64,000 nt of DNA from Macrostomum lignano (Eukaryota): positions 620,001-684,000 of the forward strand of contig NIVC01000130.1 in assembly GCA_002269645.1 (NCBI GenBank). The letters run 5' to 3'. Positions 1,461 to 32,900 of the stretch are shown here, one piece after another (position 1 is the first letter of the stretch; the number at the start of each line of letters is the position of its first letter). The translations under genes were made by a program, and so were the position numbers. The notes under the pieces are model-generated. The model worked only from the letters and a program-made list of their open reading frames with translations. It ran no database searches and was not told the DNA's origin.

Positions 1461-1905
1461 ATATAGTAGTCATAATAATGCTCCTATTTTGTATAGATAT
1501 ACAAATCAATAGAGAGAATTCCCGTGTACACAGCGCTTCCTTGTCAATTGTATTCTCTGCCATTAATTTTATTATTTTTTTCTTCTAGAAAACGCCATTT
1601 TTGTGTCAAGAATTTTTTAAACTTCCAATAATATTTAATGCTTTAATATTTATTTCCAATTAAAATTGTATTTAATAGCAGTCAGTAATTGCAGCTAAAT
1701 AAATGGTGGTTGGTATACCTGGATGCGTTTTTTGCCTGGGTCTTGGCTGGGCCCTCTTTCTAGCCATATCCTGGTCTAGAATTCCATTGTTGTGTCAGAT
1801 GTTGCACAAATTTCCCAATAGATTTGTTGCTTTTAATGTGTTTTTCGGTTTTATTTTATGTATATTGCGGGCTTTGATTTTAATGGCAAGTTGGATGAGT
1901 TCGGC

Positions 1906-4900
1906 GTGTCAGAGGGCGCCAGAACTGGGGTGTCAGAGGGCGCCAGAACTGGGGTGTCAGAGGGTGCCCCAACTGGGGTGTCAAAGGGTGCCACAACTGG
2001 GTGTCAGAGGGTGCCACAACTGGGTGTCAGAGGGTGCCACAACTGGGTGTCAGAAGAGGGCGCCAGAACTGGGGTGTCAGAGGGTGCCCCAACTGGGGTG
2101 TCAAAGGGTGCCACAACTGGGTGTCAGAGGGTGCCACAACTGGGTGTCAGAGGGTGCCACAACTGGGTGTCAGAAGAGGGCGCCAGAACTGGGGTGTCAG
2201 AGGGTGCCCCAACTGGGGTGTCAAAGGGTGCCACAACTGGGTGTCAGAGGGTGCCACAACTGGGTGTCAGAGGGTGCCACAACTGGGTGTCAGAAGAGGG
2301 CGCCAGAACTGGGGTGTCAGGGGTGCCCCAACTGGGGTGTCAAAGGGTGCCACAACTGGGTGTCAGAGGGTGCCACAACTGGGTGTCAGAAGAGGGCGCC
2401 AGAACTGGGGTGTCAGAGGGCGCCAGAACTGGGGTGTCAGAGGGTGCCCCAACTGGGGTGTCAAAGGGTGCCACAACTGGGTGTCAGAGGGTGCCACAAC
2501 TGGGTGTCAGAAGAGGGCGCCAGAACTGGGGTGTCAGAGGGCGCCAGAACTGGGGTGTCAGAGGGTGCCCCAACTGGGGTGTCAAAGGGTGCCACAACTG
2601 GGTGTCAGAGGGTGCCACAACTGGGTGTCAGAAGAGGGCGCCAGAACTGGGGTGTCAGGGGGTGCCACAATTGGTGTCAGAGGGTGCCAGAACTGGGTGT
2701 CAGAGGGTGCCACAACTGGGTGTCAGAAGAGGGCGCCAGAACTGGGGTGTCAGAGGGTGCCCCAACTGGGGTGTCAAAGGGTGCCACAACTGGGTGTCAG
2801 AAGAGGGCGCCAGAACTGGGGTGTCAGGGGTGCCACAATTGGTGTCAGAGGGTGCCACAACTGGGTGTCAGAGGGTGCCACAACTGGGTGTCAGAAGAGG
2901 GCGCCAGAACTGGGGTGTCAGAGGGTGCCCCAACTGGGGTGTCAAAGGGTGCCACAACTGGGTGTCAGAGGGTGCCACAACTGGGTGTCAGAGGGTGCCA
3001 CAACTGGGTGTCAGAAGAGGGCGCCAGAACTGGGGTGTCAGGGGGTGCCCCAACTGGGGTGTCAAAGGGTGCCACAACTGGGTGTCAGAGGGTGCCACAA
3101 CTGGGTGTCAGAAGAGGGCGCCAGAACTGGGGTGTCAGAGGGCGCCAGAACTGGGGTGTCAGAGGGTGCCCCAACTGGGTGTCAAAGGGTGCCACAACTG
3201 GGTGTCAGAGGGTGCCACAACTGGGTGTCAGAAGAGGGCGCCAGAACTGGGGTGTCAGAGGGCGCCAGAACTGGGGTGTCAGAGGGTGCCCCAACTGGGG
3301 TGTCAAAGGGTGCCACAACTGGGTGTCAGAGGGTGCCACAACTGGGTGTCAGAAGAGGGCGCCAGAACTGGGGTGTCAGGGGGTGCCACAATTGGTGTCA
3401 GAGGGTGCCAGAACTGGGTGTCAGAGGGTGCCACAACTGGGTGTCAGAAGAGGGCGCCAGAACTGGGGTGTCAGAGGGTGCCCCAACTGGGGTGTCAAAG
3501 GGTGCCACAACTGGGTGTCAGAGGGTGCCACAACTGGGTGTCAGAGGGTGCCACAACTGGGTGTCAGAAGAGGGCGCCAGAACTGGGGTGTCAGAGGGTG
3601 CCCCAACTGGGGTGTCAAAGGGTGCCACAACTGGGTGTCAGAGGGTGCCACAACTGGGTGTCAGAGGGTGCCACAACTGGGTGTCAGAAGAGGGCGCCAG
3701 AACTGGGGTGTCAGGGGTGCCCCAACTGGGGTGTCAAAGGGTGCCACAACTGGGTGTCAGAGGGTGCCACAACTGGGTGTCAGAAGAGGGCGCCAGAACT
3801 GGGGTGTCAGAGGGCGCCAGAACTGGGGTGTCAGAGGGTGCCCCAACTGGGGTGTCAAAGGGTGCCACAACTGGGTGTCAGAGGGTGCCACAACTGGGTG
3901 TCAGAAGAGGGCGCCAGAACTGGGGTGTCAGAGGGCGCCAGAACTGGGGTGTCAGAGGGTGCCCCAACTGGGGTGTCAAAGGGTGCCACAACTGGGTGTC
4001 AGAGGGTGCCACAACTGGGTGTCAGAAGAGGGCGCCAGAACTGGGGTGTCAGGGGGTGCCACAATTGGTGTCAGAGGGTGCCAGAACTGGGTGTCAGAGG
4101 GTGCCACAACTGGGTGTCAGAAGAGGGCGCCAGAACTGGGGTGTCAGAGGGTGCCCCAACTGGGGTGTCAAAGGGTGCCACAACTGGGTGTCAGAAGAGG
4201 GCGCCAGAACTGGGGTGTCAGGGGGTGCCACAATTGGTGTCAGAGGGTGCCACAACTGGGTGTCAGAGGGTGCCACAACTGGGTGTCAGAAGAGGGCGCC
4301 AGAACTGGGGTGTCAGAGGGTGCCCCAACTGGGGTGTCAAAGGGTGCCACAACTGGGTGTCAGAGGGTGCCACAACTGGGTGTCAGAGGGTGCCACAACT
4401 GGGTGTCAGAAGAGGGCGCCAGAACTGGGGTGTCAGGGGTGCCCCAACTGGGGTGTCAAAGGGTGCCACAACTGGGTGTCAGAGGGTGCCACAACTGGGT
4501 GTCAGAAGAGGGCGCCAGAACTGGGGTGTCAGAGGGCGCCAGAACTGGGGTGTCAGAGGGTGCCCCAACTGGGGTGTCAAAGGGTGCCACAACTGGGTGT
4601 CAGAGGGTGCCACAACTGGGTGTCAGAAGAGGGCGCCAGAACTGGGGTGTCAGAGGGCGCCAGAACTGGGGTGTCAGAGGGTGCCCCAACTGGGGTGTCA
4701 AAGGGTGCCACAACTGGGTGTCAGAGGGTGCCACAACTGGGTGTCAGAAGAGGGCGCCAGAACTGGGGTGTCAGGGGTGCCACAATTGGTGTCAGAGGGT
4801 GCCAGAACTGGGTGTCAGAGGGTGCCACAACTGGGTGTCAGAAGAGGGCGCCAGAACTGGGGTGTCAGAGGGTGCCCCAACTGGGGTGTCAAAGGGTGCC

Positions 4901-5368
4901 ACAACTGGGTGTCAGAGGGTGCCACAACTGGGTGTCAGAGGGTGCCACAACTGGGTGTCAGAAGAGGGCGCCAGAACTGGGGTGTCAGGGGGTGCCCCAA
5001 CTGGGGTGTCAAAGGGTGCCACAACTGGGTGTCAGAGGGTGCCACAACTGGGTGTCAGAAGAGGGCGCCAGAACTGGGGTGTCAGAGGGCGCCAGAACTG
5101 GGGTGTCAGAGGGTGCCAGAACTGAGGTGTCAGAGGGTGCCAGAACTGGGGTGTCAGAGGGCGCCACAATTGGGTGTCAGAAGAGGGCGCCAGAACTGGG
5201 ATGTCAGAGGGTGCCAGAACTGGGGTGTCAGAGGGTGCCAGAACTGAGGTGTCAGAGGGTGCCAGAACTGGGGTGTCAGAGGGCGCCACAATTGGGTGTC
5301 AGAAGAGGGCGCCAGAACTGGGGTGTCAGAGGGTGCCAGCCACAACTGGGATGTCAGAGGGCGCCACA
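1906..5368. repeat. GC-rich complex minisatellite built from ~19-26-bp variant units (core GTGTCAGAGGGTGCCACAACTGG)
   Basis: Direct tandem repetition of several interspersed unit variants over ~3.5 kb. Confidence 0.97.
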
Positions 5369-5789
5369 CAAGTGAGAGTTGTGTGCTATGCACTAACATT
5401 CGAGGCAAAGGCAATCTTTGCAAGCTTATATTTACCATACAGGTACCATTGCAGTACAAAAAGCAGAATCTTCATGGCATACATGTATAAGCCTTGTATT
5501 GAGAGTGAGTTGGCAAATACAATATGAAAAGCATACTTTTATAGATGCACCCAACTCTACATGTATGCCTCTACAGGATGATGTAGCCTTATGGACTCTT
5601 GGCCTTCAATAAATAGACTTTCAAAGGAGTTGTTTGCTTTCAGTCCCGGTAGCTTCTTCTCGAAACAATTTCAGCAAACAGACTTGTGTTTCCTTTCTCC
5701 TATATTTGAATTGAAACACGGAAATTGAAAACGGCTCAGTAGTTGTACAACTGGTAGATACTGTAGTCTGACAGACTCTGACAGTCCGA

Positions 5790-8424
5790 ATGTTCAACGT
5801 AGAGACCAGCGCTCACGGTGTTGCGAGGATCTTTGGCAACTCGTCCAGTTCGAGTCGTCGGAGTCTACCAGTGAGACTGGCTTGGTCTGCTGCATGGCTC
5901 CTACTCACTGTCCTGCTGTTGCGAGGTGTGGCCACCTACTTGGCCAAGCTCGCATCTAGTCGTCAGCCAAACGCCGGACTTAAACGCGTCTTTGTTGCTA
6001 ACGGGGCCGCCTTCGAGTTTCCAGATTTGTACTTTTGCAACGAACTACAGATTGGCGGCGGGAATAGCGTGCTGCTTAACTACAGCGAAGCTGCTTCTGT
6101 TAATTCGGCCCTGGATTTGGCTAACAACACCTTTGAGAAGGCGTTCGGCCAGCTAAATGATAGCGGGTATTGCATGCTTTATGTTTTAACTAGAATTTTA
6201 TGCTTTTGGCTGGAGCGCTGTAAGTGTTGCCTGATTGAGTTCAGCACACTGTAGGAGAGTCAGATTGAGTTGAGCACACTGTAGGAGAGTCAGATTGAGT
6301 TGAGCACACTGTAGGAGAGTCAGATTGAGTTGAGCACACTGTAGGAGAGTCAGATTGAGTTGAGCACACTGTAGGAGAGTCAGATTGAGTTGAGCACACT
6401 GTAGGAGAGTTAGATTGAGTTGAGCACACTGTAGGAGAGTCTGATTGAGTTGAGCACACTGTAGGAGAGTTAGATTGAGTTGAGCACACTGTAGGAGAGT
6501 CAGATTGAGTTGAGCACACTGTAGGAGAGTTAGATTGAGTTGAGCACACTGTAGGAGAGTCAGATTGAGTTGAGCACACTGTAAGAGAGTCAGATTGAGT
6601 TGAGCACACTGTAGGTGAATGTCAGATTGAGTTGAGCACACTGTAGGAGAGTCAGATTGAGTTTAGCACACTGTAGGTGAATGTCAGATTGAGTTGAGCA
6701 CACTGTAGGAGAGTCAGATTGGGTTGAGCACACTGTAGGAGAGTCAGATTGACTTAAGCACACTGTAGGAGAGTCAGATTGGGTTGAGCACACTGTAGGA
6801 GAGTCAGATTGGGTTGAGCACACTGTAGGAGAGTCAGATTGACTTAAGCACACTGTAGGAGAGTCAGATTGACTTAAGCACACTGTAGGAGAGTCAGATT
6901 GAGTTGAGCACTCAAAAGGCTATTGAACCCGAGCCTGCACTTTCTCTCTGAGACATTCCAGCTCGCTTTCCGAGTCTGAAAGACTCCGCCTGCTGAGGCT
7001 GCGACCTGTTTCCCTGCTCCGCTCTGTGCCGTACCGCCTTTTGTCCGACGTCGTTGGACAGAAGCTGAAGCAGACTTTTCTAGGCAACTTCGGAGTCTAC
7101 AGCGTCGGCGAAAGACCTCCAAACGATCGTCCCGTTGCCGTGTCGGAGTTTCACCATCCGGAGCACCTGAAATGCTTCCGAGTAGAGCTCACCAACTCGG
7201 AGCGACTGGCTATGCGCAGAGATAATAATCGACTGACCTTTCACTTGACTCTGGACGCGTATTATGCTACCATGCGACATGTGGCCAGTCCTTATCGGCT
7301 GCCAGACATCCCTGTACCCACTGGCAGACGTGGACAGTCGATGAATATCCGACCTCTTGACTGGAACCTCAACGATCCTCTGCAAATCGACTCTGGTAGC
7401 GGCATGGTTCTCTACTTGGTTCCGCCGGGGCACTATCCGTCTCCCCTGGCAACCAGCGGCTGCAAACGACTCCTCCTGGGTCCGGGACGCGCCTACGACA
7501 TTGCCGTGGGCATGACAGTCACCGAGCTGCTTCCGGCTTCAGATTTCACTGACAGGTAATTTTTACGCTCGTAAGCGTGTTGATGGCCTTTTTCCAAAGC
7601 TTTAAAAAATTTAAATCGTCGAAGCTACACAGTGCGCTTATAAGCTCGGAGTTTTATTGGCCAACCAACCCTTCACTCACAGGTGCGTGTCCCGGCACGA
7701 ACCAGTCGCCTTCTATAATCCGTACAACGGAGGCCGCCAATGGTTCAACTACAGCGGCTCTGTGCCCCACTATTCGCAAATTGCGGCAAATAATCTAGCC
7801 AAGTTCAACTGTTAGCCGATGCCTCAGGCTTTGCCATGGAAATACCGCGGCCTGCCCGTGTGCCTGAACCTTAGCAGCGCCATAGAAATCAACGAGACCC
7901 GAGCGGAAATACTCTGGCGAGGACTTCAAGCAATGAATTCTAGCGAACAGAACGACTGGAAGCAAAGTCTGCAACCGGACGACCGCAAGTTGCCGCCGTG
8001 TCGTCAAAGTCGCTACTGGACGGTGGACTCCTACGGCCGGTGGCCAAACTCGGCCAGCCTGTTTCGCTACGCTACTCAACTGGTGGCCTCCGAGTTGGCA
8101 TTGGCTCCAGAAAATTATCGATCCTTATTGGCCGGTCTGAGAATCGTGTCCACTTTCAAAGACGTGTCCGAGTACGCGCACGCCGAAGCTATCGAGGAGT
8201 ACACCAGGCGGGGCGGTCTGAAACTGACACTGCGAGCGGCTTCCAGTTTCAGCGATTTAAATGTCTTGGCCAGGGACTACAATCTGCAGCAGTTCGTGGC
8301 GGACACTGGCGGGGCAATGGGACTTTATCTGGGCTGCTCGATGTTGACTCTGTGCGAGCTGCTTGAGTTGCTGCATGGAGTTGTGCTCAGCCTGGCTGCT
8401 AAGCTGCGGAACGGAAGGGGTTGA
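5790..8424 (+). CDS. DEG/ENaC (ASIC/amiloride-sensitive channel family) subunit, 3 exons, ~570 codons, with an in-frame TAG at 7813-7815 (possible pseudogene or error)
   Basis: Exons 5790-6166, 6962-7555 and 7683-8424 join in phase with GT-AG (1713 nt). Motifs: TSAHG (HG motif), TM1, FPDLYFCN (FPAVTxCN-like), and FVADTGGAMGLYLGCSMLTLCELLE (TM2 with GxS filter). Confidence 0.88.
6234..6910. repeat. 30-bp intronic minisatellite (GATTGAGTTGAGCACACTGTAGGAGAGTCA) in ENaC intron 1
   Basis: ~22 tandem copies visible. Confidence 0.97.
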
Positions 8425-8428
8425 CGAT

Positions 8429-9616
8429 GGGATCAGGGATCAGGATCAGGGATCGGGATCAGGGATCGGGATCAGGGATCGGGATCAGGGATCGGGATCA
8501 GGGATCGGGATCAGGGATCGGGATCAGGGATCGGGATCAGGGATCGGGATCAGGGATCGGGATCAGGGATCGGGATCAGGGATCGGGATCAGGGATCGGG
8601 ATCAGGGATCGGGATCAGGGATCGGGATCAGGGATCGGGATCAGGGATCGGGATCAGGGATCGGGATCAGGGATCGGGATCAGGGATCGGGATCAGGGAT
8701 CGGGATCAGGGATCGGGATCAGGGATCGGGATCAGGGATCGGGATCAGGGATCGGGATCAGGGATCGGGATCAGGGATCGGGATCAGGATCAGGGATCGG
8801 GATCAGGGATCGGGATCAGGGATCGGGATCAGGGATCGGGATCAGGGATCGGGATCAGGGATCGGGATCAGGGATCGGGATCAGGGATCGGATCAGGGAT
8901 CGGGATCAGGGATCGGGATCAGGGATCGGGATCAGGGATCGGGATCAGGGATCGGGATCAGGGATCGGGATCAGGGATCGGGATCAGGGATCGGGATCAG
9001 GGATCGGGATCAGGGATCGGGATCAGGGATCGGGATCAGGGATCGGGATCAGGGATCGGGATCAGGGATCGGGATCAGGGATCGGGATCAGGGATCGGGA
9101 TCAGGGATCGGGATCAGGGATCGGGATCAGGGATCGGGATCAGGGATCGGGATCAGGGATCGGGATCAGGGATCGGGATCAGGGATCGGGATCAGGGATC
9201 GGGATCAGGGATCGGGATCAGGGATCGGGATCAGGGATCGGGATCAGGGATCGGGATCAGGGATCGGGATCAGGGATCGGGATCAGGGATCGGGATCAGG
9301 GATCGGGATCAGGGATCGGGATCAGGGATCGGGATCAGGGATCGGGATCAGGGATCGGGATCAGGGATCGGGATCAGGGATCGGGATCAGGGATCGGGAT
9401 CAGGGATCGGGATCAGGGATCGGGATCAGGGATCGGGATCAGGGATCGGGATCAGGGATCGGGATCAGGGATCGGGATCAGGGATCGGGATCAGGGATCG
9501 GGATCAGGGATCGGGATCAGGGATCGGGATCAGGGATCGGGATCAGGGATCGGGATCAGGGATCGGGATCAGGGATCGGGATCAGGGATCGGGATCAGGG
9601 ATCGGGATCAGGGATC
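8429..9616. repeat. 13-bp tandem repeat (GGGATCAGGGATC)n, ~91 copies, directly after the ENaC stop codon
   Basis: Near-perfect array; the 13-aa periodicity in the ORF track equals 3 units. Confidence 0.97.
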
Positions 9617-9763
9617 GGGGTCATTGCTGAGAAAGAGGGGTCATTGCTGAGCAAGAGGGGTCATTGCTGAGCAAGAGGGGTCATTGCTGAGCAAGAGGGG
9701 TCATTGCTGAGCAAGAGGGGTCATTGCTGAGCAAGAGGGGTCATTGCTGAGAAAGAGGGGTCA
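9617..9763. repeat. 20-bp tandem repeat (GGGGTCATTGCTGAGCAAGA), ~7 copies
   Basis: Direct tandem copies abutting the 13-bp array. Confidence 0.93.
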
Positions 9764-10137
9764 TCGATGTGCGAGAGTTGTTATCGATATCACTCCTTGC
9801 GAGGGACACGGATATCGGTTTTTTTTTAATCTATTCGCTATGACAAACAAATGGCTCTATGGCTCTAGCTACTTAGTCAGACTAGAAAAACAAACTCTGA
9901 ACCCAATTAAGGCCAACACGACTAAAGGCTGTAACTACTACATATAATGTAAATATTTGTCTCATTCTGCAAGTCTCTCTTTCACTCCAGCAGCTGCGCA
10001 CAAAATTTTGCTATATTGAAAGAAGATAAGCAGCGACTAGTTTAGAGGTTGATAAACTTATATAAACTTCTAATAACGATATTGCAAAATGGCAAACAGT
10101 TAAACATATTTGAGTTCTTATCCATCCAGAAGTTGAA

Positions 10138-13789
<3,652 letters not shown>

Positions 13790-14516
13790 TCATAGACAAT
13801 TTCATATGTAAAGAGCTTATAGCTTCAGTTTTGCATCTTAAAATCATTTTCTGTCTGTGTAGTCACTGTAGTGAATACTTTCCTGCAGCACCCATTGGCT
13901 GATTTCGTTGCGCAAGGCATGGGGGTCCTTGGACATCAAGGTGTCCATGCCAGGTCAGCACTTCAGCATGGAGGGGAAAGTAAACAGGGCCTTATAAGGC
14001 AGGAATCGCGGCTGCGACAGACAATGGACAGTGAACAGAACAGACGACAGACAGTGCTGGCCTCCTAGGGGCTTGTGTGGCGTTGGCAAAAGTGCGTGAA
14101 GGCTAAGAGTGCATACTTTGAGTGAAAAGCTGGCAAAGAATAAGTGTGTGAAGTTTTGCGTTTTCGATGTCTATCGTTTCAAAACTAGATGGGTAATACG
14201 TAAGAACTTTTTGTACAACCCGTCCTTAACTTCGTTTTTTCTGTCCCAGGTGCACTGCTGAGCGAGCCACAGTCTCAAAAGTGTTATGTTGTCTTTTCGA
14301 AGAGTCTTAGCTCCCAAGTGACCGTTTTTATTTCTCTTTTGGTTTAACAGCCAGCCTTTCCTTTTCACATAAGCCAAGCGTTCCTTTTACGTACAGTACA
14401 GAGACGCTTCCGCTAAGCCATAGACAAAAGTCTGCTGTGGCTGATTCAATAGAATGTCATACAATTTATAAAATAAAAACAACTCCACCCACAGCAAAGA
14501 GTACCACTCCTGTCAG

Positions 14517-17500
14517 GTCAACCTGCCCAACAGTGTCGGCATGACTCCGCTGATGCTGACAGTTGCTGAAGGACAAGTTGACGCGATCGACGTGCTGCAC
14601 AGGATGGGCGCAGATTTGGATATTGAGGTGGGGCTTGAAAAATCAGTTTTTAGCTGGCTTATATTGTTTTGCTATCGCACTGAATCAATTGGCTTTTTGG
14701 CCATAGACATTTTTTATCCCTTTATCCACGACCATTGATGATGGCGTTTATCGATGATATTGAAAAAAATAATCAATATTTTGATTTTCCACTCGATTTT
14801 CCTAGAAATGACCTAGAGCAGGGGTCGGAAAAATTTTCACCTCCAGGGCCAGGTAGAGAACCTAGCGCATGACTGTGGGCCAGAGGAGGGGAGAGAGAAG
14901 AGTGAATAGACAAGAGAAATAAGAGAAAGGAGTGGCGAGGGAATAAAGGACAAGAGAAGACGAGATGGTTGATGATGACAATGTTGAGTGGAGAGGAGAA
15001 GAGAGAAGAGGAGAGGATAGGAGAGGAGAGGAGAGGAAAGGAGAGGAGAGGAGAGGAGAGGAGAGACGAGAGGAGAGGAGAGGAGAGGAGAGGAGAGACG
15101 AGAGGAGAGGAAAGGAGAGGAGAGGAGAGGAGAGGAAAGGAGAGGAGAGACGAGAGGAGAGGAAAGGAGAGGAGAGGAGAGGAGAGGAGAGACGAGAGGA
15201 GAGGAAAGGAGAGGAGAGGAGAGGAGAGGAGTGGAGAGACGAGATGAGAGGAGAGGAGATGAGAGGAGACGAGAGGAGAGGAGAGGAGATGAGAGGAGAG
15301 GAGAGGAGAGGAGAGGAGAGGAGAGGAGAGGAGAGGAGAGGAGAGGAGAGGAGAGGAGAGGAGAGGAGAGGAGAGGAGAGGAAAGGAGAGGAGAGGAGAT
15401 GAGAGGAGAGACGAGAGGAGAGGAAAGGAGAGGAAAGGAGAGGAGAGGAGAGGAGAGGAGTGGAGAGACGAGATGAGAGGAGAGGAGATGAGAGGAGACG
15501 AGAGGAGAGGAGAGGAGAGGAGAGGAGAGGAGAGGAGAGGAGAGGAGAGGAGAGGAGAGGAGAGGAGAGGAGAGGAGAGGAGAGGAGAGGAGAGGAGAGG
15601 AGAGGAGAGGAGAGGAGAGGAGAGGAGTGGAGAGACGAGAGGAGAGGAGAAGAGAAGAGAAAGGGGAGAGAAGAAAGCTAAGTAGAGACACAAACTTTGA
15701 GCGGCCCGGATTGCTATTGTGCAGTTTCAAGAACCCTAAGACCAGATAGAGAGGATTTGCGGGCCGCATGTGGCCTGGGAGCTGGAGTCAGCCGACCACT
15801 GAGCTATAGGAATGTGTATACGTCTTAAGCGTTTCTAACAATGTCTTACTTTGGTTGTGTTTTCTTTGTTTAGCCAGACATCTCCCTGCCCCTTGAATTG
15901 AATGTTGTCTTCTTGACCTTGAATCACGGCATTAACTTGAGTCTATACATTTCTAGTGAACTTCTGTCGCGGGTTCAGTACAGACTTTACCGCCCTCAAA
16001 AACCCATCGTCCAAACCGTGTCAGGACAAGCTAAGCTTCACCGCTCTGACCCACGCATCGGTGCGCAACAACTCGCCGGCTGTGACAAAACTGCTCAAGC
16101 TTCAAGCTAGGCCGGATCCGCAGGACTTTTGCGGCAACACGCCGCTAATCTGGGCGGCCAGGTGCGGCAACGCGGATGTGATCAGGGAGCTGCGCGAGAG
16201 CCTGACAGATCTGCCCCAGTGGTTGCACAAAGGCGAATACAAAATGGATGCCGGGCAGTGGGCTGCCTATTTTGGTCACAATGAGTGCAAGAGAATCATT
16301 GATGAGAGGTACGACTAGACTAGCTCTGTGAACATTCATAGAGCTTTTCGCTTAAGAAAGTTAGGATTCTATGTGAATTTTGTATCCTACACACATGTCC
16401 TGTGCCTAAAATTCATGAAAATGGTAAAGCAGTGACTAGACAACCTGCGACAGATCCTAAACGATGTCTAGACAACCTGCGACAAATCCTAAACGATGTC
16501 TAGACAACCCTCGATAGATCCTAAACAATGTCTAGACAACCCGCGACAGATCCTAAACAATGTCTAGACAACCCTCGATAGATCCTAAACAATGTCTAGA
16601 CAACCCTCGATAGATCCTAAACAATGTCTAGACAACCCTCGATAGATCCTAAACAATGTCTAGACAACCCACGATAGATCCTAAACAATGTCTAGACAAC
16701 CCCAGATATATTTTTAACAATGCCCGAAACAACCAACGGTAGATCCTTGAAACAATGTCTAGACAACCCTCGATAGATCCTAAACAATGTCTAGACAACC
16801 CACGATAGTTCCCAAAAAATGTCTAGACAACCCAAGATAGATTTTTAACAATGCCCGAGACAACCAATGGTAGATCCTAAACAATGTCTAAACAACCCAC
16901 GATAGATCCCAAAGATGTCAACCCAGGATAGATCCTAAACAATGTCTAGACACAACCCACTAATCGATGCAGTGCCCAAACAACCCACTTCTTTCTAAAT
17001 GAAGTCTCAACCCAGTTTAGATTAGAGTCTCTGCCAGATCACCGTCTGTTAAATTAAAAATCTATCCTATCTTATACCGATCACAACTCAAATCTTTTAT
17101 GTCAGAGTCAAACAGTTGATGCAGTTGGATGCCGCAGCATCATCTGACCCTGTCCAACCCGAAATTGAAACGGCCAATATAACGGCCAATGAAACGGCAT
17201 CGTATCCGGCGATAGACGCACGAAGGCCTTGGTACACAATGCAATCGCGCAGGTGAGATGATAGCCATCTGATTTCTCATCATTGGTTTTATTACTTGAG
17301 CAAGCAATTCTCCTAGGTGTTATTGTCTGCGATTCTCCTCAGACGTGGCTACGCCATGATAATTAACATAATTGACTTCGAAAACGAACTAAATCTGACA
17401 AAACGACACGGCGCCGAACTGGATTTTCATGAAGAGTTAAAAAGTCTCCTTCACGCGTTTGTTAAAATGGGCTTTGAGACGAAATATTTCGAGAATAAGT

Positions 17501-20500
17501 AAGTTGTTTAAGTGTTACAATTTGTACATACTGCTGGAATTCTCGTAATAACAGACATCTATTAACTGCGTTCTTCCTCTGGACCACGACATATTAAGGA
17601 AAAGAAATTAGCATTTAAAACAAGAGAAAAGGTTATCTATCTATGTTTACTATTATAGCTCGTACTACAGCCTAGCATACGCGTTAATCGTTACTTTGAA
17701 ATTTCCTCCGCGTATAAGCTTCAGCCAGTAAGAACTTAGGGTGGGGACTATTATGAAATTCCAGCAGTCAATGAAATTCATGGGGTGGGGAATATATCCC
17801 AATTTTAGGAAGTGTTGGCCATAGACTCGCTTTCAGATGAGCAATCCTTTCTATTCCATTATCCATGGGGAACAACACACTGCATGCGGTAGTTATGATC
17901 TCCATTGCCAAGACCTCAGTCACAACACAGTCTATGGTCTCCATTGCCAAGACCTCAGTCACAACACCGTCTATGGTCTCCATTGCCAAGACCTCAGTCA
18001 CAACACCGTCTATGGTCTCCATTGCCAAGACCTCAGTCACAACACAGTCTATGGTCGTCTCCATTGCCAAGACCTCAGTCACAACACAGTCTATGGTCTC
18101 CATTGCCAAGACCTCAGTCACAACACCGTCTATGGTCTCCATTGCCAAGACCTCAGTCACAACACAGTCTATGGTCTCCATTGCCAAGACCTCAGTCACA
18201 ACACAGTCTATGGTCTCCATTGCCAAGACCTCAGTCACAACACAGTCTATGGTCTCCATTGCCAAGACCTCAGTCACAACACAGTCTATGGTCTCCATTG
18301 CCAAGACCTCAGTCACAACACAGTCTATGGTCTCCATTGCCAAGACCTCAGTCACAACACAGTCTATGGTCTCCATTGCCAAGACCTCAGTCACAACACA
18401 GTCTATGGTCTCCATTGCCAAGACCTCAGTCACAACACAGTCCATGGCCAACTTTGCTGTTTAGGCCACAGATTCGATATTACCTCGTAGATGTGTCAAG
18501 CCAAGAACATGGATGAAGGAATCCTTCCATGTTATTCCTTCATCCATTATCCAGCATTCTAGGAATATACGAATATAGAATCTGTGGACTAGGTCTTATA
18601 CGAGATACGAGTATTACCTATCAAATGGAGCCCTATCGCTAACCTGGAACTTGAAATTCTTTACAGATGTGTCGAATTCTTCAAAAATCTGATGTCAAAC
18701 ACTGACTGGCCATTAAGTGACTTCAATGAGCACGACGCCTTCCTGCTGTGCATCTGCAGCCACGGCGGCGAAGGATTCGTGTACGCCACCGATGGAAAAG
18801 TGAAGTTGGAAGACGTTTTCAGTCAGGTACATGTATATTAGTATTAATATTAATAATTGATATTACACCTGCCCCAATTGGGCCAGATATGTGCAACCGA
18901 CAGCTCAGCTGCAGCTATTGTGCGCGGCGCATCTGAAGGCTGCGTAGTACGGCTGTTCAGTCCAAGGACTGGGAGGGGGTCACCACGCACCCTCAATTCT
19001 GGTACCAATTTTACAGCTGGGTGAACTGACACAATGCATGAGTTAAGTGTCTTGCTCAAGAACACAAATTGTTTTGAGTGGATCGAGAATCGAACCCCCG
19101 ACCTTTCGGTCGTAAGTCCGACGCTCTAATCACTATAGGAGTTACAACCCCTCAGTCAAATATCAAGTATAACCTATTCTTGATCTTATAACTATTTGTA
19201 CTCTTATTTAGCAAGCAAGCGCTAAACTTAATAAGTTAGAAAGTTACATATCGTCGAAAATTTTTGCCGATCAATCTGCTTAGCTTTTAATAGCGATCCA
19301 TGGCTACAAAAAGTAATCACCTGTCTTACAAGCAAATAAACTAAATAAATCACTATCTCTCATTTCTATCTCTTGAACCTCAGTGACGTAAAATTTTCGG
19401 TATTAGGTCATCATCGTATTTTAATATGCCTCCTTAATATTTGAGAAGCTTCCTAAGTTGTCTGGTGAGCGCAAATATGTAATTAATTCATATTTGGTGA
19501 AACTTTCGTAATTCTCGGCAGCCTCTTGCGTTTCTTCGTAAATCTAAGACCAAGGACTACTAAAAGTATAGAAGGTTGCAACACTCAACATCTATGGAAA
19601 ATGTTTCGAAGGCCACTTTTGAAAGCTTTTCTTTGTGGAAGGTTCAAAGCAGAATATGCGGATTATTTGTCCTTTTTACATATCGTTCCCCAAGCCTAAT
19701 TAAGCAACACAAATTTATTTTGCAGGTGCAGCAAACTAGCGGACTCAAAAATAAACCGAAACTGTTCGTGGTACAGTCGTGCCGCAACCTGGATACGGAT
19801 GCAGATCAAGTTCAAGACAGCAGGCCAGATGTCCACTACAGAAATCAGCAGGACTGCTTCTACGCCTACAGCGTTGTCGAGGGCTGTTTGTCGCATCGAC
19901 ATCCGGAGCGCGGCTGCCTGTTCGCTCAGGTGCAGGGGCGTCGCCATGAATTTTCTCCGGGGACAAAGCAAAGAGTTTTACATGTACATGTACATGACTA
20001 AATTCCTACATGTACGAGAGTACATTATTTTGAGAGTCGGTGTTGTCAGCGCTCATTTTAGCACCGCAGGCACTCATTTTAGCGCCGCAGGAACTCATTA
20101 TGGCGCCGCAGGCACTCATTTTAGCGCCGCAGGCACTCATTTTAGCGTCGCAGGCACTCATTTTAGCGCCACAGGCACTCATTTTAGCGCCGCAGGCACT
20201 CATTTTAGCGCCGCAGACACTCATTTTAGCACCGCAGGCACTCATTTTAGCGCCGCAGGCACTCATTTTAGCGCCGCAGGCACTCATTTTAGCGCCGCAG
20301 GCACTCATTTTAGCGCCGCAGGCACTCATTTTGGCGCCGCAGGCACAATTTTAGCACCGCAGGCACTCATTTTGGCGCCGCAGTCACTCATTTTAGCGCC
20401 ACAGGCACTCATTTTGGCGCCGCAGGCACTCATTTTAGCGCCGCAGGCACTCATTTTAGCGCCACAGGCACTCATTTTAGCGCAACAGGCACTCATTTTG

Positions 20501-22270
20501 GCGCCGCAGGCACTCATTTTAGCGCCGCAGGCACTCATTTTAGCGCCACAGGCACTCATTTTAGCGCCACAGGCACTCATTTTGGCGCCGCAGGCACTCA
20601 TTTTAGCGCCGCAGGCACTCATTTTAGCGCCGCAGGCACTCATTTTAGCACCGCAGGCACTCATTTTAGCGCCGCAGGCACTCATTTTAGCGCCGCAGGC
20701 ACTCATTTTAGCGCCACAGGCACTCATTTTAGCGCCGCAGGCACTCATTTTAGCGCCGCAGGCACTCATTTTAGCGCCGCAGGCACTCATTTTGGCGCCG
20801 CAGGCACAATTTTAGCACCGCAGGCACTCATTTTGGCGCCGCAGTCACTCATTTTAGCGCCACAGGCACTCATTTTGGCGCCGCAGGCACTCATTTTAGC
20901 GCCACAGGCACTCATTTTAGCGCCGCAGGCACTCATTTTAGCGCCGCAGGCACTCATTTTTGGCGCCGCAGGCACTCATTTTTGGCGCCGCAGGCACTCA
21001 TTTTAGCTCATTTTAGCACTGCAGACCTCATTTTAGCGCCGCAGGCACTCATTTTAGCGCCGCAGGCACTCGTTTTAGCGCCGCAGGCACTCATTTTAGC
21101 TCATTTTAGCACTGCAGACCTCATTTTAGCGCCGCAGGCACTCATTTTAGCGCCGCAGGCACTCGTTTTAGCGCCGCAGGCACTCATTTTAGCGCCGCAG
21201 GCACTCATTTTAGCGCCGCAGGCACTCATTTTAGCGCCGCAGGCACTCATTTTTGGCGCCGCAGGCACTCATTTTAGCTCATTTTAGCACTGCAGACCTC
21301 ATTTTAGCGCCGCAGGCACTCATTTTAGCACCGCAGGCACTCGTTTTAGCGCCGCAGGCACTCATTTTAGCTCATTTTAGCACTGCAGACCTCATTTTAG
21401 CGCCGCAGGCACTCATTTTAGCGCCGCAGGCACTCGTTTTAGCGCCGCAGGCACTCATTTTAGCGCCGCAGGCACTCATTTTTGGCGCCGCAGGCACTTA
21501 TTTTAGCTCATTTTAGCACTGCAGACCTCATTTTAGCGCCGCAGGCACTCATTTTAGCTCATTTTAGCACTGCAGACCTCATTTTAGCGCCGCAGGCACT
21601 CATTTTAGCTCATTTTAGCACTGCAGACCTCATTTTAGCGCCGCAGGCACTCATTTTAGCGCCGCAGGCACTCGTTTTAGCGCCGCAGGCACTCATTTTA
21701 GCGCCGCAGGCACTCATTTTAGCGCCGCAGGCACTCATTTTAGCGCCGCAGGCACTCGTTTTAGCGCCGCAGGCACTCATTTTAGCGCCGCAGGCACTCA
21801 TTTTAGCGCCGCAGGCACTCATTTTAGCGCCGCAGGTGCTATATTTAAGCTCACTGAAACAAAATTATTGCTTTCCACAACGGGTCACAAGGTGGGGGGG
21901 GGGGACAAAGGATTGGTATGTACTTCCCATAGCTTTCACTGGGTGGGACATGCCTCCCTTATCCCCCCCTCCCGGTGGCGAAGCCCCTGCTCAGGTGAAA
22001 CACAAAATATTGAATCAACCAGCTCTACTGTTGAGCAATTTCTGATGATGAAAGAATGATTTTCTTAATTTGAATTTCCAGGCCCTCCGCGACGTTCTTC
22101 TCGACGAAGATAGCGACCTTCGTGTGGATGAATTCACCAGCTTATTTCCGGCAGTAACTCACCGGGTAGCCATTGAGACAAACGACAAACAGATTGCCTG
22201 CACAAAGAGTACATTGAGGAAGCTGTTGTACTTTCCACCGCTGCCAAGCTGCCCCAGTTGGGTATCTTGA
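14517..22270 (+). CDS. Ankyrin-repeat + caspase (peptidase C14A) protein, at least 7 exons, >=416 aa; 5' exons uncertain (candidate ATG 14189)
   Basis: Exons 14517-14627, 16025-16308, 17106-17252, 17343-17498, 18667-18826, 19726-19929 and 22082-22270 join in phase (1251 nt). ANK motifs GMTPLM, SFTALT and GNTPLIWAA. Caspase motifs RGYAMIIN, CSHG, KPKLFVVQSCR, YSVVEG..SHRHPERGCLFAQAL and KSTLRKLLYF. The ANK and caspase parts are each confident; their fusion rests on the phase-2 junction 16308/17106. Confidence 0.8.
14985..15670. repeat. Polypurine (GGAGA)n low-complexity array in an ANK intron
   Basis: Almost pure A/G on the + strand. Confidence 0.97.
16437..16960. repeat. 32-bp intronic minisatellite (GATAGATCCTAAACAATGTCTAGACAACCCTC), degenerate distally
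   Basis: Period 32 (TGTCTAG at 16561 and 16593); lies between the ANK and caspase exons. Confidence 0.9.
17905..18445. repeat. 39-bp intronic minisatellite, ~14 copies
   Basis: CTATGGTCTCCATTGCCAAGACCTCAGTCACAACACAGT tandem; 13-aa periodicity in the ORF track. Confidence 0.96.
18841..19151 (-). mobile_element. tRNA-derived SINE with a CORE-like central domain, in a caspase intron
   Basis: Minus strand: A-box-like TAGTGATTAGAGCG, B-box-like GGTTCGATTCTC, then GTGTTCTTGAGCAAGACACTTAACTC...CTGTAAAATTGG resembling the MIR/CORE consensus, then an AT-rich tail. Confidence 0.68.
20048..21836. repeat. 21-bp intronic minisatellite (GCAGGCACTCATTTTAGCGCC) with higher-order blocks
   Basis: Tandem array in the last caspase intron; variant GCTCATTTTAGCACTGCAGACCTC units recur periodically after ~21000. 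Confidence 0.97.
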
Positions 22271-23442: not shown

Positions 23443-25216
23443 ATGGAAAACGAAGCTGAGAATGTTGAACTGCAGCTAATAAACCAACGACTTGGCTGTA
23501 GAGCTGATTTAAAGTTAAAACTGCTTGTTGTCGGCTCAAGTCTTGTTGGCAAGACTAGCTTAGTTAGTAGGTTCGATAATCCAAAATCGAATATTGACCA
23601 TCTAAAACGCACGCTGCCCGGCTCCTTTCATCACTTCATTATGCCAGTTGGTGACGGTCGAAATGCTCAAATTAGAATCTGGGACATGTGCGGGATGGTA
23701 AGGATCGTTTCACCTATCCAATTACATCACAGTTTAATGTATATCCGTGATTCTTAGTTTTCGAAATTTCGTCTTGTCTAGTAACTATGTCTAGTCTAAT
23801 CAAGTCTTAGTCTATCTAGTCTCATCTAGTCTAGTCTCACTCTCGTCTAGTAGTATCATGATCTCATCTAGGTCTAGTCTAGTCTCACTCGTCTAGTGTA
23901 GTCTCATCTAGTTAAGTCTCACTCGCGTATTGTCTCGTAGTCTCATCGAATCAAGTTTTACTCTCGTCTAGTCTCATCTAATCTAGCCTAACTCTCGTCT
24001 AGTCTAGTCTAGTCTCATCTAGTCTAATATCATCTAGTCAAGTCTCACTCGTGTCTAGTCTAGTCTCATCTAGTCAAGTCTCACTTTCGTCTACTAGTCT
24101 AATCTCATCTAATCAAGTCTCACTCTCGTCTAGTCTAGTCTCACTCTCGTTTCGTCTAGTCTCACTCTCGTCTAGTCTAGTCTCACTCTCGTCTAGTCTA
24201 GTCTCACTCTCGTGTAGTCTAGTCTCACTCTCGTCTAGTCTAGTCTCACTCTCGTCTAGTCTAGTCTCACTCTCGTCTAGTCTAGTCTCACTCTCGTCTA
24301 GTCTAGTCTCACTCTCGTCTAGTCTAGTCTCATCTAGTCTAATCTCTATCGCCTCGTCGCATTTAGTCGAGTCTCATCTGTTCTAGTCTAATCTCATCTA
24401 ATCTAGTCTAGTCTAGAATAGTCAAGTCTAAGGCCTCATCTCATATCCTCTGAGTCTTTTTTTATCCTTTCGGCATCTCTCTTCTTGAGCAATTTAATCT
24501 CCGTCATCCGTCATATATATATGTCACTGCCCTCTGTTCTCACTGCCCTCTTGTATGGACGCAATTTTTTCATTTTCTCACTTTTACATTCTCAAAGCCC
24601 GTGCACAAAAAGGAAAACGAATCGGCCAATTTTCCACAACTCGCACCCAACACCAACCTGCACCCATCGCGCGTTCCAGGAGAAGCTGCACGAATACAAC
24701 GCAGAATTTTACGCTGGCGTCAACGCTGTGATGCTGGTATTTGCGTTAGACAACTACGATTCGTTCAATCAGCTTCCCGATTGGCTGGATAGAATTGGGC
24801 GCCTATCCAAATGTAGCCAGTGCCAAAAACTGCAAAAGCAGACAATTGCAGACCAAGAGCCGCAGCAGCACCAGCAGCAACAGGAATTGAGTAAGAAGCC
24901 GAAAAAAATAAGTCCCTGTCAGCACATTGACCTCGCCTTAGTTGGCAACAAATCCGATTTAGGCAACAATCGCCTAATTTCATCTATGGAAGCTGACGAG
25001 TTTGCACTTCATTACGGCATGACTTACGTGGAGACGTCGGCTCTTTCGATGGACAACGTGCAAAAAGCTTTCTACGATTTGGTTCTATCAGCTGTTAGAA
25101 GACAACAGCAAGTTGCAGATCAAGATGGATTAGAAGCTGGAGGTCATAAGCATCAGCGATTGGCTGGTTGGAAGGCGCTGTGCTGCAGCTGCACTACTGG
25201 TCGTTCTGGGGCTTAA
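23443..25216 (+). CDS. Divergent Rab-like small GTPase, 2 exons, ~263 aa
   Basis: Exons 23443-23697 and 24680-25216 (phase 0). KLLVVGSSLVGKTS (G1), IWDMCGM|EKL (G3), LVFALDNYDSF, LVGNKSDL (G4), YVETSAL (G5), and a CCSC cluster near the C-terminus. Confidence 0.9.
23790..24430. repeat. TCTAG-rich intronic repeat, 21-bp unit (TCTAGTCTCACTCTCGTCTAG) in its core
   Basis: Tandem/degenerate array in the Rab-like intron. Confidence 0.9.
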
Positions 25217-26586: not shown

Positions 26587-27853
26587 TAGTTCAGTTGTTG
26601 AGAAAGTTCTCACAGTTTCTAGAAAATTTGATTCAAAAACTTTATAGAACATTCTAGAAGCTTATCGTGTGGATATATATTGAGGGTGGGTATATACAAT
26701 TTTGATAAACTTCTTTTCAATTTCATGATTATTGCTATCAAAGCCAGATCAACTACATGGATCTCTCTCAACCCCATATTTGTGGTCTATTACTTTATGA
26801 CTTTAAATTTGGTATCAAAGATCAAAGTAGCCAAATTGAGCAGTTGCATTAACAGTGCATTTGGTACTAATACTGTCTAAATGCATTGTGCAATATTGGT
26901 TTGCTCACTTTTGCAAGGCTCAGCCTCAAAGATTTGCCCTGGTCAGGGTGTCCTTCTAAGGTTGATGATGACTACCTGCATACACTTATTGAAGTTGACC
27001 CTCAACAAACCATGCGTGAGTTGGCGCAAGTCCTTGGGGTAGACCATTAAATGATTGCCACTCACTTGCATCAACTGGGCAAAGTGCACAAGTTGACTCA
27101 ATGGGTATCCCATGAATTGTCCAATGGGACTGCAAATGCAGGTCAGAGGCGGCCACTACTCTTCTCTCCTATTGGCTCACACACAATTGGCTAAAGTCAA
27201 TTGTTACTGGCAATGAAAAATGGTGCTTATACATGAACATCAAGCATCAACGGTCATGGGTGGATGCTGATGTGACCCCTGAGCCATAGCCTAAAGTTGG
27301 ACTCCATCCCCGCAAGGTCATACTGTGCATTTGGTAGGATTGCAAAGGTGTGATCCTCTACAAGCTACTGCCACCCAACACATTGATTATGGCCAACCTG
27401 TACTGCTAACAGCTAGACAGATTGGCCACTGCTATTGCATAGAAGTGACCAAATTATGGCCTGGTCTGATTCTTGCACAATAACGCCTGCCCCCACATTG
27501 CCAAGATGACTCATCAAAAGTTACTGGACCTTGGCTAGGAACTGGTGTCTCATCTTCCATATTCCCCCAACCTGGCACCTAGCAACTACCATCTTTTCTT
27601 GGCCCTGACCAATGCCTTGACGAGCAAAACTTTTGCTGATAATGAAGCCCTGGATAACTGGCTCAAAAAGTTTTTTGCCCAAAACCTGAGAAATTCCACG
27701 CTGATGGCATTATGTCTCTGCCTGAAAAATGGCAGAAGGTGATTGATTCAGATGGCAATTACTTCATTTCTTAAAGTCTTTCCATATTTAAAAAAAAACT
27801 TGTTTGGAGGAAGGTTTTAGAAACTATAAAAACTTTCTCGACAACCCAATATA
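26587..27853 (+). mobile_element. Full-length decayed mariner (Tc1/mariner, DD34D) transposon, ~1.27 kb
   Basis: Degenerate TIRs (GTTGTTGAGAAAGTT at the 5' end; AACTTTCTCGACAAC at the 3' end, TA-flanked). Transposase relics SLKDLPWSGCP, WVSHEL, IVTGNEKW, LHNNACPH and YSPNLAPSNYHLF; many stops and frameshifts. Confidence 0.93.
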
Positions 27854-29721: not shown

Positions 29722-29923
29722 TGATAGTATTTTGTGGAAATGAAACTGTCTCTAAGATTAAAAAAATGCACAATGGTCATCATATCCCATGTTTCTATGT
29801 GAACCCCCCCCCCCATCCAATCTCACTTAAAATTGTAGATTTATATGCTGATTACTACATAAAATTGCTACAGTAAAAAATTTTTCTTATTGATTCCAGT
29901 CCAACTGCTAATTGCCCCCAGTC

Positions 29924-32900
29924 ATGCAGTCGGCCTCGCAACACGAGACTGAGCGAATAGAGCTCATTAATCGAATACGCGAATGGAACGAGAATCGTCT
30001 AGATTTATTCGAAATCTCCTTCCCTAATCAGAACTTGGAGTTTTTCGGCGCTATGCGCTTCTATTTTCAAGGCGACGATCAGAAATACCAGACTAAATGC
30101 CTTCGAGTGTCCAGCACGGCAACCACTCGCGATTTGATTGGTCCTCTGGTTGAGAAATTTCATCCGGATCTGAAAATGCTCGGCTGCGATATCTATGGCC
30201 TCTACGAGGTTCACTCCAATGGAGAGGAGCGCCGGTTGTCTGAACAAGATCGCCCACTGCTAGTGCAGCTGAATTGGGGCAAAGATGATCGAGATGGCAA
30301 ATTTATATTGAAAAACGAGACTAAAGTTAATCGGCAGAGAGAGGTGAGACTCTCCGAGTTCTGTTGAATTTGTTATTGCTGCTGCTAACCGGTTGAACTG
30401 CTTGTTCCTGACACCCAGCTTGAGACTTCTGACACCCAGCTTGGGATTCCTGACACCCAGCTTGGGACTCCTGACACCCAGCTTGAGACTTCTGACACCC
30501 AGCTTGGGACTTCTGACACCCAGCTTGAGACTTCTGACACCCAGCTTGAGACTTCTGACACCCAGCTTGGGACTCCTGACACTCATTTGAGACTTCTGAC
30601 ACCCAGCTTGGGACTCCTGACACCCATCTTGAGACTTCTCCTGAAACCCATCTTGGGACTTCTGACACTCAGCTTGTGACTCTGACACCCAGCTTGGGAC
30701 TTCTGACCCCCAGCTTGGGACTTCTGATACCCAGCTTGAGACTTCTCCTGACACTCAGCTTAAGACTTCTTCTGACACTCAGCTTAAGACTTCTTCTGAT
30801 ACCCAGCTTAAGACTTCTTCTGATACTCAGCTTAAGACTTCTGACACCCAGCTTGGGACTTCTCCTGACACCCAACTTGACGCTTCACCTGACTCAACTT
30901 TGAACTTTGAACAATTTCAGTGTGTTTAAGCTGCGCCATTTGACTTTACAGGTCATTCTTGGGACAAATGAGACTTTAGGGTCATGATTTAGTGCCAGGT
31001 AAAGTTTAATGTTAGGTTTTTTTGAAGACACGTGACTCACAACGTGCCATATAGTTTTATATAAAACAACGCGTTGCATAAACATTACACAGCATTGCAT
31101 AAGCCTGTCAAAATTAGTTTAACTCAATATATAACTCGGGTTGATTCCCCCCAAACAGATGAACAACAACGCCAGTTCAGTCGGCGGCGTTGGCACTGCA
31201 GGCGAAAGTTTCAAACGCGACAAGAAGCGCCTGTCTAAACGCGAGAAAAAGAAGAAAGAGCAAATGGAAGCTGAGCAGAAAAAGGCAACAGCCGTGCCTG
31301 ATTCCACTTTTACTAGGACAATTTCTAATCCGGAACTGGTGATGGCGCGTCGGAGGAAGCAAAAGCTTGAGAAGATTGAGCAGGTGAGGAAAGCACTTCG
31401 TATTTTTTATATTGTGCTCTGATGAGTCTGCTTAATGCTTCTGTTTAGGCAGATTTTGAGGAGTCTCAAAATCTCAGGCTTACAATCTTACTGTAAGCCT
31501 GATTGAGGCTATGAGATTTTGATACTGTAAGCCTGATTGAGGCTATGAGATTTTGATACTGTAAGCCTGATTGAGGCTATGAGATTTTGATACTGTAAGC
31601 CTGATTGAGGCTATGAGATTTTGATACTGTAAGCCTGATTGAGGCTATGAGATTTTGATACTGTAAGCCAGATTTTGAGGCTATGAGATTTTGATTCTGT
31701 AAGCCATAATGAAGCTATGAGATTTTGATGCTGTAAGCCATAATGAAGCTATGAAATTTTGATACTGTAAGCTAGATTTTGAGGTTATGAGATTTTGATT
31801 CTGTAAGCCATAATGAAGCTATGAGATTTTGATACTGTAAGCCATAATGAAGCTATGAGATTTTGATACTGTAAGCCAGATTTTGAGGTTATGAGATTTT
31901 GATGCTGTAAGCCATAATGAAGCTATGAGATTTTGATACTGTAAGCCATAATGAAGCTATGAGATTTTGATACTGTAAGCCAGATTTTGAGGCTATGAGA
32001 TTTTGATACTGTAAGCCATAATGAGGCTATGAGATTTTGATACTGTAAGCCTGATTGAGGCTATGAGATTTTGATACTGTAAGCCTGATTGAGGCTATGA
32101 GATTTTGATACTGTAAGCCTGATTAAGGGATGCCCTAAACTGTGAGAGTTTCCCACCCGAAGCCGCAATCTTCGAGCCCTAAATAATCAGACATCGAGGC
32201 CATTTATCCCATTGGTAATCCTCTCGCCCGCCACAGGCCAGCGCCGCCGGTTCAAAAAGTGCCACCCTGAAAGTTTACGGCGACGCACTGAAGCCGGACA
32301 TACCCTACAAAGCGCTGCTGCTCACCACTGATGACACGTGCGCCGATATCGTGTCCGAGATGTTAGAAAAGTACAACATGCTACCTGCCGCTAATCCGGC
32401 GGATTATTGCCTGATTAAAATTTGGCTGCCGCCAAGAGAAGATCGGCAGTCTTACAGGCCAGACCAGCTCGAGGAGCCGCTGCCACCAGACGAGCGACCC
32501 TTGGATATCATGTTTAATAGGCCGCCAGCTAAAGGGACTTTCATGTTTCAGGTTAGTGCGCTGGATGGGATATGCATGACAAATTTATTTTATCATTAAC
32601 TTCTAAATATCGCCCTTTACCTACTTTCCAAGAATCGCTTTCTATCTAATTTGTAAGAATTGCCCTTTTCTAGAATCAACCTTTCCTAGATTCGCCCTTT
32701 CCAAGAATCCTCTTCTGTGTTAAATTTCCAGAAACGCCCTTTCTAAAAATCGCTCTTTCCAAGAATCGCTGTTTTCAAAAATCGCCCTCTGTATCCAATT
32801 TCCAATAATCGTCCTTTCCAAAAAATCGACATTTCCAAGAATCTTCCTTTTAAAAAATCGCCCTTTCCAATAATCGTTTTCGATAATCGCCCTTTCCAAG

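Follow-up and report, generated by a model that had tools for sequence, protein, structure and literature searches.

The DNA analysed here, which we call the window, is a stretch of 64,000 nucleotides (nt) from the free-living flatworm Macrostomum lignano (assembly GCA_002269645.1, contig NIVC01000130.1, positions 620,001 to 684,000 of the forward strand); all positions are counted from its first nucleotide. The sequence is of animal genomic character, its introns filled with minisatellites, and between 14517 and 22270 it holds what is very probably one M. lignano protein-coding gene with seven exons. Its predicted product, of 408-417 amino acids (aa), is a caspase with a prodomain of ankyrin repeats (ANK).

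Gene model of the ankyrin-caspase locus

A preliminary description, made from the sequence alone, held that seven exons read in a single frame of 1251 nt. The rebuilt coding sequence has exactly this length, comprising 416 codons and a TGA without any internal stop. Every intron has GT..AG borders, and all 12 splice sites are canonical. The 5' end had to be revised, as position 14517 proved to be a splice acceptor rather than a start, and the genome offers its first in-frame ATG only at 14541. The features of the locus are as follows.

14511-14516, forward strand: acceptor tgtcag before exon 1, phase 0; candidate spliced-leader (SL) trans-splice site, or cis acceptor
14517-14627, forward strand: exon 1, ANK repeat 1 with its beta-hairpin and helices, VNLPNSVGMTPLML...DLDIE; first genomic ATG at 14541
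14628-16024, forward strand: intron 1, phase 0, with a (GAGAG)n array at 14986-15660
16025-16308, forward strand: exon 2, ANK repeats 2-4, to ...KRIIDE plus the AG of a split Arg codon
16309-17105, forward strand: intron 2, phase 2, holding TAG 16316-16318 and a 32-bp minisatellite at 16436-16952
17106-17252, forward strand: exon 3, which completes the last ANK helix (VKQLMQL) and continues into a disordered linker carrying QLD/A, SSD/P and AID/A
17343-17498, forward strand: exon 4, in which p20 begins (GYAMIINI...KRHGAELD), with R202 (17404-17406)
18667-18826, forward strand: exon 5, p20, with CSHGG and the catalytic His265 (18761-18763)
19726-19929, forward strand: exon 6, QSCRN with the catalytic Cys305 (19780-19782), the intersubunit linker (LDTD/A, QVQD/S), and the start of p10 with SHRHPERGCLF (R344)
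22082-22270, forward strand: exon 7, remainder of p10, with the TGA stop at 22268-22270
22410 (ATTAAA) and 22614 (AATAAA), forward strand: candidate polyadenylation signals, by pattern match only

The Pfam profiles Ank, Ank_2, Ank_3 and Ank_4 match over aa 3-94 and beyond (Ank_2 49.7 bits with a cut-off of 27.3; Ank 47.8 bits with a cut-off of 21.1), and an AlphaFold model of the protein has four helix pairs before residue 143 at predicted local distance difference test (pLDDT) values of 80-95. Both results uphold the earlier count of about four ankyrin repeats. The aspartate-containing linker that had been described after them was also recovered, with QLD/A at aa 138-141, SSD/P at aa 144-147 and AID/A at aa 167-170. 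Residues 145-170 of this linker are predicted to be disordered (pLDDT <50), as is the intersubunit loop. The p20 and p10 regions that had been placed after the linker are covered by a full-length Peptidase_C14 match (PF00656, MEROPS C14A; aa 182-404, profile positions 1-233 of 233, E=5e-29, 102 bits with a cut-off of 21.4), and the Pfam scan showed Ank and Peptidase_C14 together.

The motifs CSHGG, with His265, and QSCRN, with Cys305, are invariant across a six-sequence alignment of the window protein and its paralogues, and they align with the catalytic dyad of caspase-7. The arginines of the pocket that binds the P1 aspartate are the equivalents of R179 and R341 of caspase-1. In the window protein, R202 (KRHGAELD) and R344 (SHRHPERG) align with caspase-7 and do not vary in the family alignment either. 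With R202, H265, C305 and R344, the predicted protein has the full set of four residues by which caspase catalysis and binding of the P1 aspartate are defined. The best sequence matches in the PDB are caspase-7, -3 and -8 (E ~1e-20), with the catalytic residues aligned, and Foldseek places the predicted model at a template-modelling (TM) score of ~0.8 to caspase-3, -6 and -7. The fused gene model restores a complete and apparently active caspase.

Paralogous proteins match each of the seven exons separately in tblastn, exon 2 with E values down to 1e-19. With these exon-by-exon matches, and with the introns on either side of exon 2 conserved at other loci, the predicted exon model is far beyond chance.

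The junction between exons 2 and 3

The raw ankyrin open reading frame (ORF; 15956-16318) ends with a TAG at 16316-16318, three codons into the intron that follows the donor. The preliminary description had paired a phase-2 donor at 16308/16309 with a phase-2 acceptor at 17106, and both sites lie where it placed them: the donor reads GAT GAG AG/gtacga (16308/16309) and the acceptor ttatgtcag/A GTC (17105/17106). Its further proposal, that splicing bypasses the stop of the ankyrin ORF, gains support from a conserved phase-2 intron, from homologous residues on both sides and from a continuous helix. In an exhaustive HMMER search, single alignments span the ankyrin repeats, the linker and the caspase domain (query 51-408 for the paralogue P0014, query 2-407 for P0024). 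In the six-sequence alignment the junction IIDE-R/VKQL (slash at the intron position) aligns with FIRE-C/IRQL, FIQE-A/IRSL, LEKL-I/RRL, YIRT-C/IRKF and LIVL-S/INSL, and the read-through end, ERYD followed by the stop, has no counterpart among the paralogues. We then took four paralogous loci (L001-L004) from the same assembly, GCA_002269645.1, and mapped the exons onto each. A phase-2 intron lies at the identical aligned codon in all four, and intron 1 (phase 0, ...E/D(K/R)L...) is also kept in L002, L003 and L004.

L001, 10249-10836: junction intron in P0014, phase 2
L002, 5671-5753: junction intron in P0024, phase 2; counterpart of intron 1 at 5314-5386, phase 0
L003, 7170-7442: junction intron in P0010, phase 2; counterpart of intron 1 at 6779-6876, phase 0
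L004, 10103-10439: junction intron in P0086, phase 2; counterpart of intron 1 at 9697-9779, phase 0

The AlphaFold model (mean pLDDT 74.6) carries one helix, residues 123-143, across the junction at pLDDT ~90. By alignment and model, the stop at 16316-16318 is intronic, and the predicted splice from 16308 to 17106 prolongs the last ankyrin helix into the flexible linker.

Several observations weigh against a single fused gene. The exhaustive search returned two short proteins that are 100% identical to parts of our model. UniProt A0A1I8IED9 (P0017, 'ANK_REP_REGION domain-containing') comprises 106 aa corresponding to aa 9-114 and joins exons 1-2 by splicing, with its start at ATG 14541; A0A1I8IF03 (P0008, 'CASPASE_P20 domain-containing') has 130 aa that correspond to aa 287-416 and is spliced from exons 6-7. 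The public models break the locus into separate fragments, and because only these two partial M. lignano proteins represent it, the locus is public as no more than two unrelated-looking pieces. Both the 408-aa and the 417-aa fused products are absent from a collection of 15 billion protein sequences. Exons 3-5 occur in no deposited protein in a word-indexed search of a 5.8-billion set; word-indexed searches, whether run with the full model, with a profile of the caspase domain or with a segment across the junction, missed even known paralogues. Finally, an in-frame ATG at 17119 makes a caspase-only product formally possible.

Separate public ankyrin and caspase entries, the ATG at 17119 and the lack of a junction-spanning protein in the databases are what one would expect of two genes, namely an ankyrin-only protein ending at TAG 16318 (...IIDERYD and stop) and a caspase-only gene beginning at ATG 17119 (MQLDAAASS...). 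We consider this arrangement highly improbable. The two public entries are partial and do not amount to complete alternative genes, the junction intron keeps its position and phase in four paralogues that are annotated as fused, and just past the junction the residues have homologues in the paralogue helix and lie within a helix that is predicted to be continuous with confidence. No AATAAA follows the stop between 16309 and 17052, and the only variant hexamer in intron 2, ATTAAA at 17053, is at the far end of the intron. Moreover, reading through the phase-2 GTA/GTG donor leads to an early stop in every paralogue, and therefore the stop at 16318 carries no evidential weight.

The 5' end and the neighbouring genes

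The frame is open only from a stop at 14469, and there is no in-frame ATG before 14541. Ankyrin hairpins usually follow the pattern VNxxDxxGxTPL, which the residues ahead of this ATG, VNLPNSVG, resemble; they align with VNRPDSLG, TNRPDNMR and INAEDNLR in the paralogues. In M. lignano, about 30% of the genes have a 35-nt spliced leader added, the last three letters of which are ATG (PMC8629364), and flatworm SL AUGs can act as initiators, according to PMC10468722 and PMC12582326, the latter citing Cheng et al. 2006. An SL ATG joined at 14517 would be in frame, reading M-VNLPNSVGMTPL... (M-VNLPNSVG), and donation of the start codon by the spliced leader would fit a frame that begins at an acceptor and has no ATG ahead of it. 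The acceptor itself speaks less clearly for this: the M. lignano SL acceptor motif is [T/C]TNCAG (PMC8629364), and in TGTCAG the CAG fits but position 2 is G and not T. The SL sequence was searched for within the window and was not found. A TATAAAA at 14467 was considered together with initiation at ATG 14541. As far as the sequence can indicate, two starts of translation are the most likely, an AUG donated by the SL at 14517 and the genomic ATG 14541.

No upstream exons were found 5' of 14514 with an ANK consensus, with tblastn of the paralogues or with phmmer --max on six-frame fragments of 1-16100. The window gene lacks the N-terminal domains of its paralogues, and its introns are unusually large and repeat-filled, features that are compatible with a decaying partial duplicate and so count against an intact gene. 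It would then be the C-terminal cassette of a longer family member, silent or decaying and without its own promoter or start codon. Such an origin would account for the absence of paralogue-like N-terminal exons upstream in the window, for conserved coding residues (VNLPNSVG) without an upstream ATG, for introns swollen with minisatellites and for a full model that is missing from public protein sets. We nevertheless think it unlikely. Over its seven exons the ORF is unbroken, its 12 splice sites are canonical, and all of the catalytic residues are kept. Identity to the paralogues is only 35-44%, yet the gene contains not one frameshift or stop, and it must therefore have had a long independent history without either. 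Models of near-identical second copies (P0156-P0158) also have open frames, and SL trans-splicing, which, as noted, is common to about 30% of the genes of this animal (PMC8629364), would account for the missing ATG.

The phase-0 acceptor and the homologous residues ahead of the first ATG could also be read as signs of a longer gene, in which 14517 is a cis acceptor fed by one or more unseen upstream exons, possibly those of a Ras-family GTPase, to give a GTPase-ANK-caspase protein. A Ras/Roc-like GTPase gene does lie next to it, upstream on the same strand, and a caspase with a ROC prodomain has been reported in the annelid Owenia (PMC11463336). We regard this as improbable, since the GTPase ORF reaches its own stop at 13422-13424, its only phase-0 GT sites (e.g. 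TCT/GTAGCT at 13278) miss the GT[G/A]AG donor motif (PMC8629364), no paralogue has a GTPase domain, and both public models of the locus begin at the same Met. With its own stop and no usable phase-0 donor, the upstream GTPase was not accepted as a cis-fused part of the gene.

The ANK-caspase gene has the following neighbours in the window.

5772-8421, forward strand: ASC/ENaC-type channel gene, last exon 7816-8421 (Pfam ASC 1.8e-11)
11224-11433 and 12924-13424, forward strand: Ras-family small GTPase gene (Pfam Ras 5.7e-16), 1.1 kb upstream of the caspase gene
23443-25213, forward strand: second Ras-family GTPase gene (Pfam Ras 4e-27), beginning 1.2 kb after the caspase stop, at ATG 23443
26871-27739, forward strand: ORF fragments of mariner/Tc1-like appearance (...SPNLAPSNYHLF...), without a Pfam match at E<=0.001; transposase remnant unconfirmed
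29912-33700, forward strand: afadin-like gene (two RA domains, one FHA domain), exons 29912-30364, 32219-32596 and ~33300-33700

The ANK-caspase gene is thus flanked by two small-GTPase genes. The upstream GTPase gene has no ATG before its P-loop, and its first coding exon opens at a phase-0 acceptor, aattTTACAG/ACA, that fits the M. lignano SL motif; an SL-donated AUG would be a possible start here as well. An AATAAA at 14472 lies 40 nt before the acceptor at 14517, and the upstream GTPase and the caspase gene may form an operon. Rfam and ARAGORN gave no matches on the window, and therefore a tRNA-like stretch suspected in intron 5 is unconfirmed. Long tandem arrays occupy almost every intron and intergenic stretch of window positions 1-26000.

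1906-5368: tandem array, period 24
8429-9623: tandem array, period 13
11501-12829: tandem array, period 20
14986-15660: tandem array, GAGAG
16436-16952: tandem array, period 32
17894-18447: tandem array, period 39
20052-21836: tandem array, period 21

Cassette paralogues and known ankyrin caspases

Pfam finds both Ank and Peptidase_C14 in the M. lignano proteins P0014, P0024, P0010, P0013 and P0047, and the deposited proteins PAA77988.1, PAA59752.1, PAA89054.1 and PAA93319.1 have the same ANK-caspase cassette. The window gene is 35-44% identical to the cassette paralogues, and the caspase domains of the M. lignano cassettes cluster with 80% bootstrap in a crude neighbour-joining (NJ) tree. Ahead of the cassette, P0010 and P0013 have a kinase followed by a caspase-like domain whose catalytic residues are replaced, P0086 has an ANK array of ~1700 aa, and P0024 and P0159 have a region with a sub-threshold Mab-21_C match. 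These comparisons show that the predicted ANK-linker-caspase cassette recurs as a conserved unit in a gene family of M. lignano, with the window gene as its stand-alone short form. In each of the four mapped paralogues (L001-L004) one exon encodes the entire caspase domain, and the window gene has four additional introns that split the linker and caspase region (17253-17342, 17499-18666, 18827-19725 and 19930-22081). The crude NJ tree does not separate intron gain in the window gene from 3'-biased loss in the paralogues.

Two of the N-terminal regions deserve separate mention. In P0010 (L003, PAA89054.1) and P0013 the domain order is kinase, caspase-like, ANK, caspase, and in the first caspase-like domain GCG replaces SHG and QTHRD replaces QxCRx; it therefore appears to be a pseudo-caspase upstream of an active cassette. 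In PAA59752.1 (P0024, L002), residues 1-590, ahead of the cassette, score 21.9 bits against Mab-21_C, for which the cut-off is 24.1, and the same is seen in PAA80948.1; the N-terminal region of P0024 has no sequence match in the PDB. This is only a hint of a Mab-21/cGAS-like head on proteins of the P0024 type. If true, the joining of such a head to a caspase would be of interest.

As to mechanism, the enzyme would be made as a zymogen in which the ankyrin repeats serve as a protein-binding recruitment module in place of CARD or DED. Binding of a partner or scaffold would bring monomers together, and dimerisation would activate the protease. Once active, it would cut the aspartate sites of the intersubunit loop (LDTD/A, QVQD/S) and possibly those of the linker too, releasing the ANK domain. 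We infer this scheme of ANK recruitment, induced-proximity activation and self-processing at LDTD/A or QVQD/S from the motifs in the predicted protein. The enzyme may also act as an initiator, and it may be part of an immune or cell-death module, as the preliminary description suggested.

A broader and quite tentative idea, which we would not yet favour, is that ANK-linker-caspase is a portable 'effector cassette', marked by two conserved introns and coupled to varied putative sensor or regulator heads. The heads would be a kinase with a pseudo-caspase, possibly a Mab-21/cGAS-like region, or very long ANK arrays, and the window gene would be a free-standing cassette translated from a spliced-leader-donated AUG. 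If this were true, ANK caspases would predate flatworm parasitism and not be an adaptation to it, and they would belong to a lineage-specific, modular system of cell-death or immune signalling with a logic comparable to that of death-fold or NLR modules.

Caspases of this kind have been described before. 'ANK caspases' were named and analysed as a platyhelminth-specific clade in Genome Biol Evol 2024 (PMC11463336), which credits their first observation, in Schistosoma, to Lee et al. 2014. That study proposed that they are initiator-type caspases recruited through the ANK domain, found them restricted to parasitic flatworms and interpreted the architecture as linked to parasitism; for M. lignano it reported only a caspase with a 'kinase-like pro-domain', sister to the ANK-caspase clade. 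The predicted window protein is an ANK-prodomain caspase of the same plan and from the same phylum, with N-terminal ankyrin repeats replacing CARD or DED and followed by p20 and p10. It differs in that it comes from the free-living M. lignano and has a short ANK domain of four repeats. Sequences of neodermatan ANK caspases did not appear among the best 150 HMMER matches or in the word-indexed searches. The link to the parasite clade is indirect and runs through the kinase-type M. lignano caspase, which shares the cassette and is the protein placed as sister in PMC11463336. Since several M. lignano genes, the kinase type among them, appear from their sequences to carry a bona fide ANK-caspase cassette, the restriction to parasites is questioned. 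Our results are further evidence for several ankyrin-prodomain caspases in a flatworm that is free-living and early-branching.

Within M. lignano, the kinase-prodomain caspase PAA89054.1 (A0A267GUE2, P0010) has the same cassette, a caspase domain 40% identical to that of the window protein and both cassette introns in the same position and phase. It differs in its N-terminal kinase and caspase-like domain, and its caspase domain lies in one exon whereas that of the window gene is split by four extra introns. PAA77988.1 (P0014, 356 aa) is the closest paralogue (43-44% identical), with ANK and caspase domains and the same junction intron. It is encoded at a different locus, however, its caspase domain is intronless, and a longer model of it, A0A1I8G2I6 (P0047), adds many upstream ANK repeats.

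Outside the flatworms, the CARD and DED initiators (caspase-9, -2 and -8) likewise combine a long interaction prodomain, a flexible linker and aspartate sites in the intersubunit loop, and by analogy a recruitment-driven logic of activation may be shared with them; the window prodomain is an ankyrin solenoid rather than their death-fold six-helix bundle. The executioner caspases-3 and -7 are the best PDB matches in sequence and structure (27-29% identity, TM ~0.8, catalytic residues aligned), but they have only a short prodomain. Because caspase-8 scores nearly as well, we claim no orthology to caspases-3 and -7. In molluscs, Batillaria KAK7463151.1 and Haliotis XP_048241358.1 also join ANK repeats and Peptidase_C14 in one polypeptide, with the domain order reversed in Haliotis. 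In the crude NJ tree their caspase domains do not group with the M. lignano cassette clade, and they therefore look like independent fusions.

The preliminary description had stressed that an ankyrin prodomain is unusual beside CARD and DED. This holds for model organisms but not as a novelty, given that ANK caspases are published (PMC11463336) and paralogues deposited. What is new here is a corrected gene model for the locus, an incremental gain. M. lignano is also a genetically tractable regeneration model and would offer a practical route to the partners and the activation of ANK prodomains. Since ankyrin-prodomain caspases of flatworms have already been described, the architecture is known, and the window gene is a further and so far mis-annotated member of that group.

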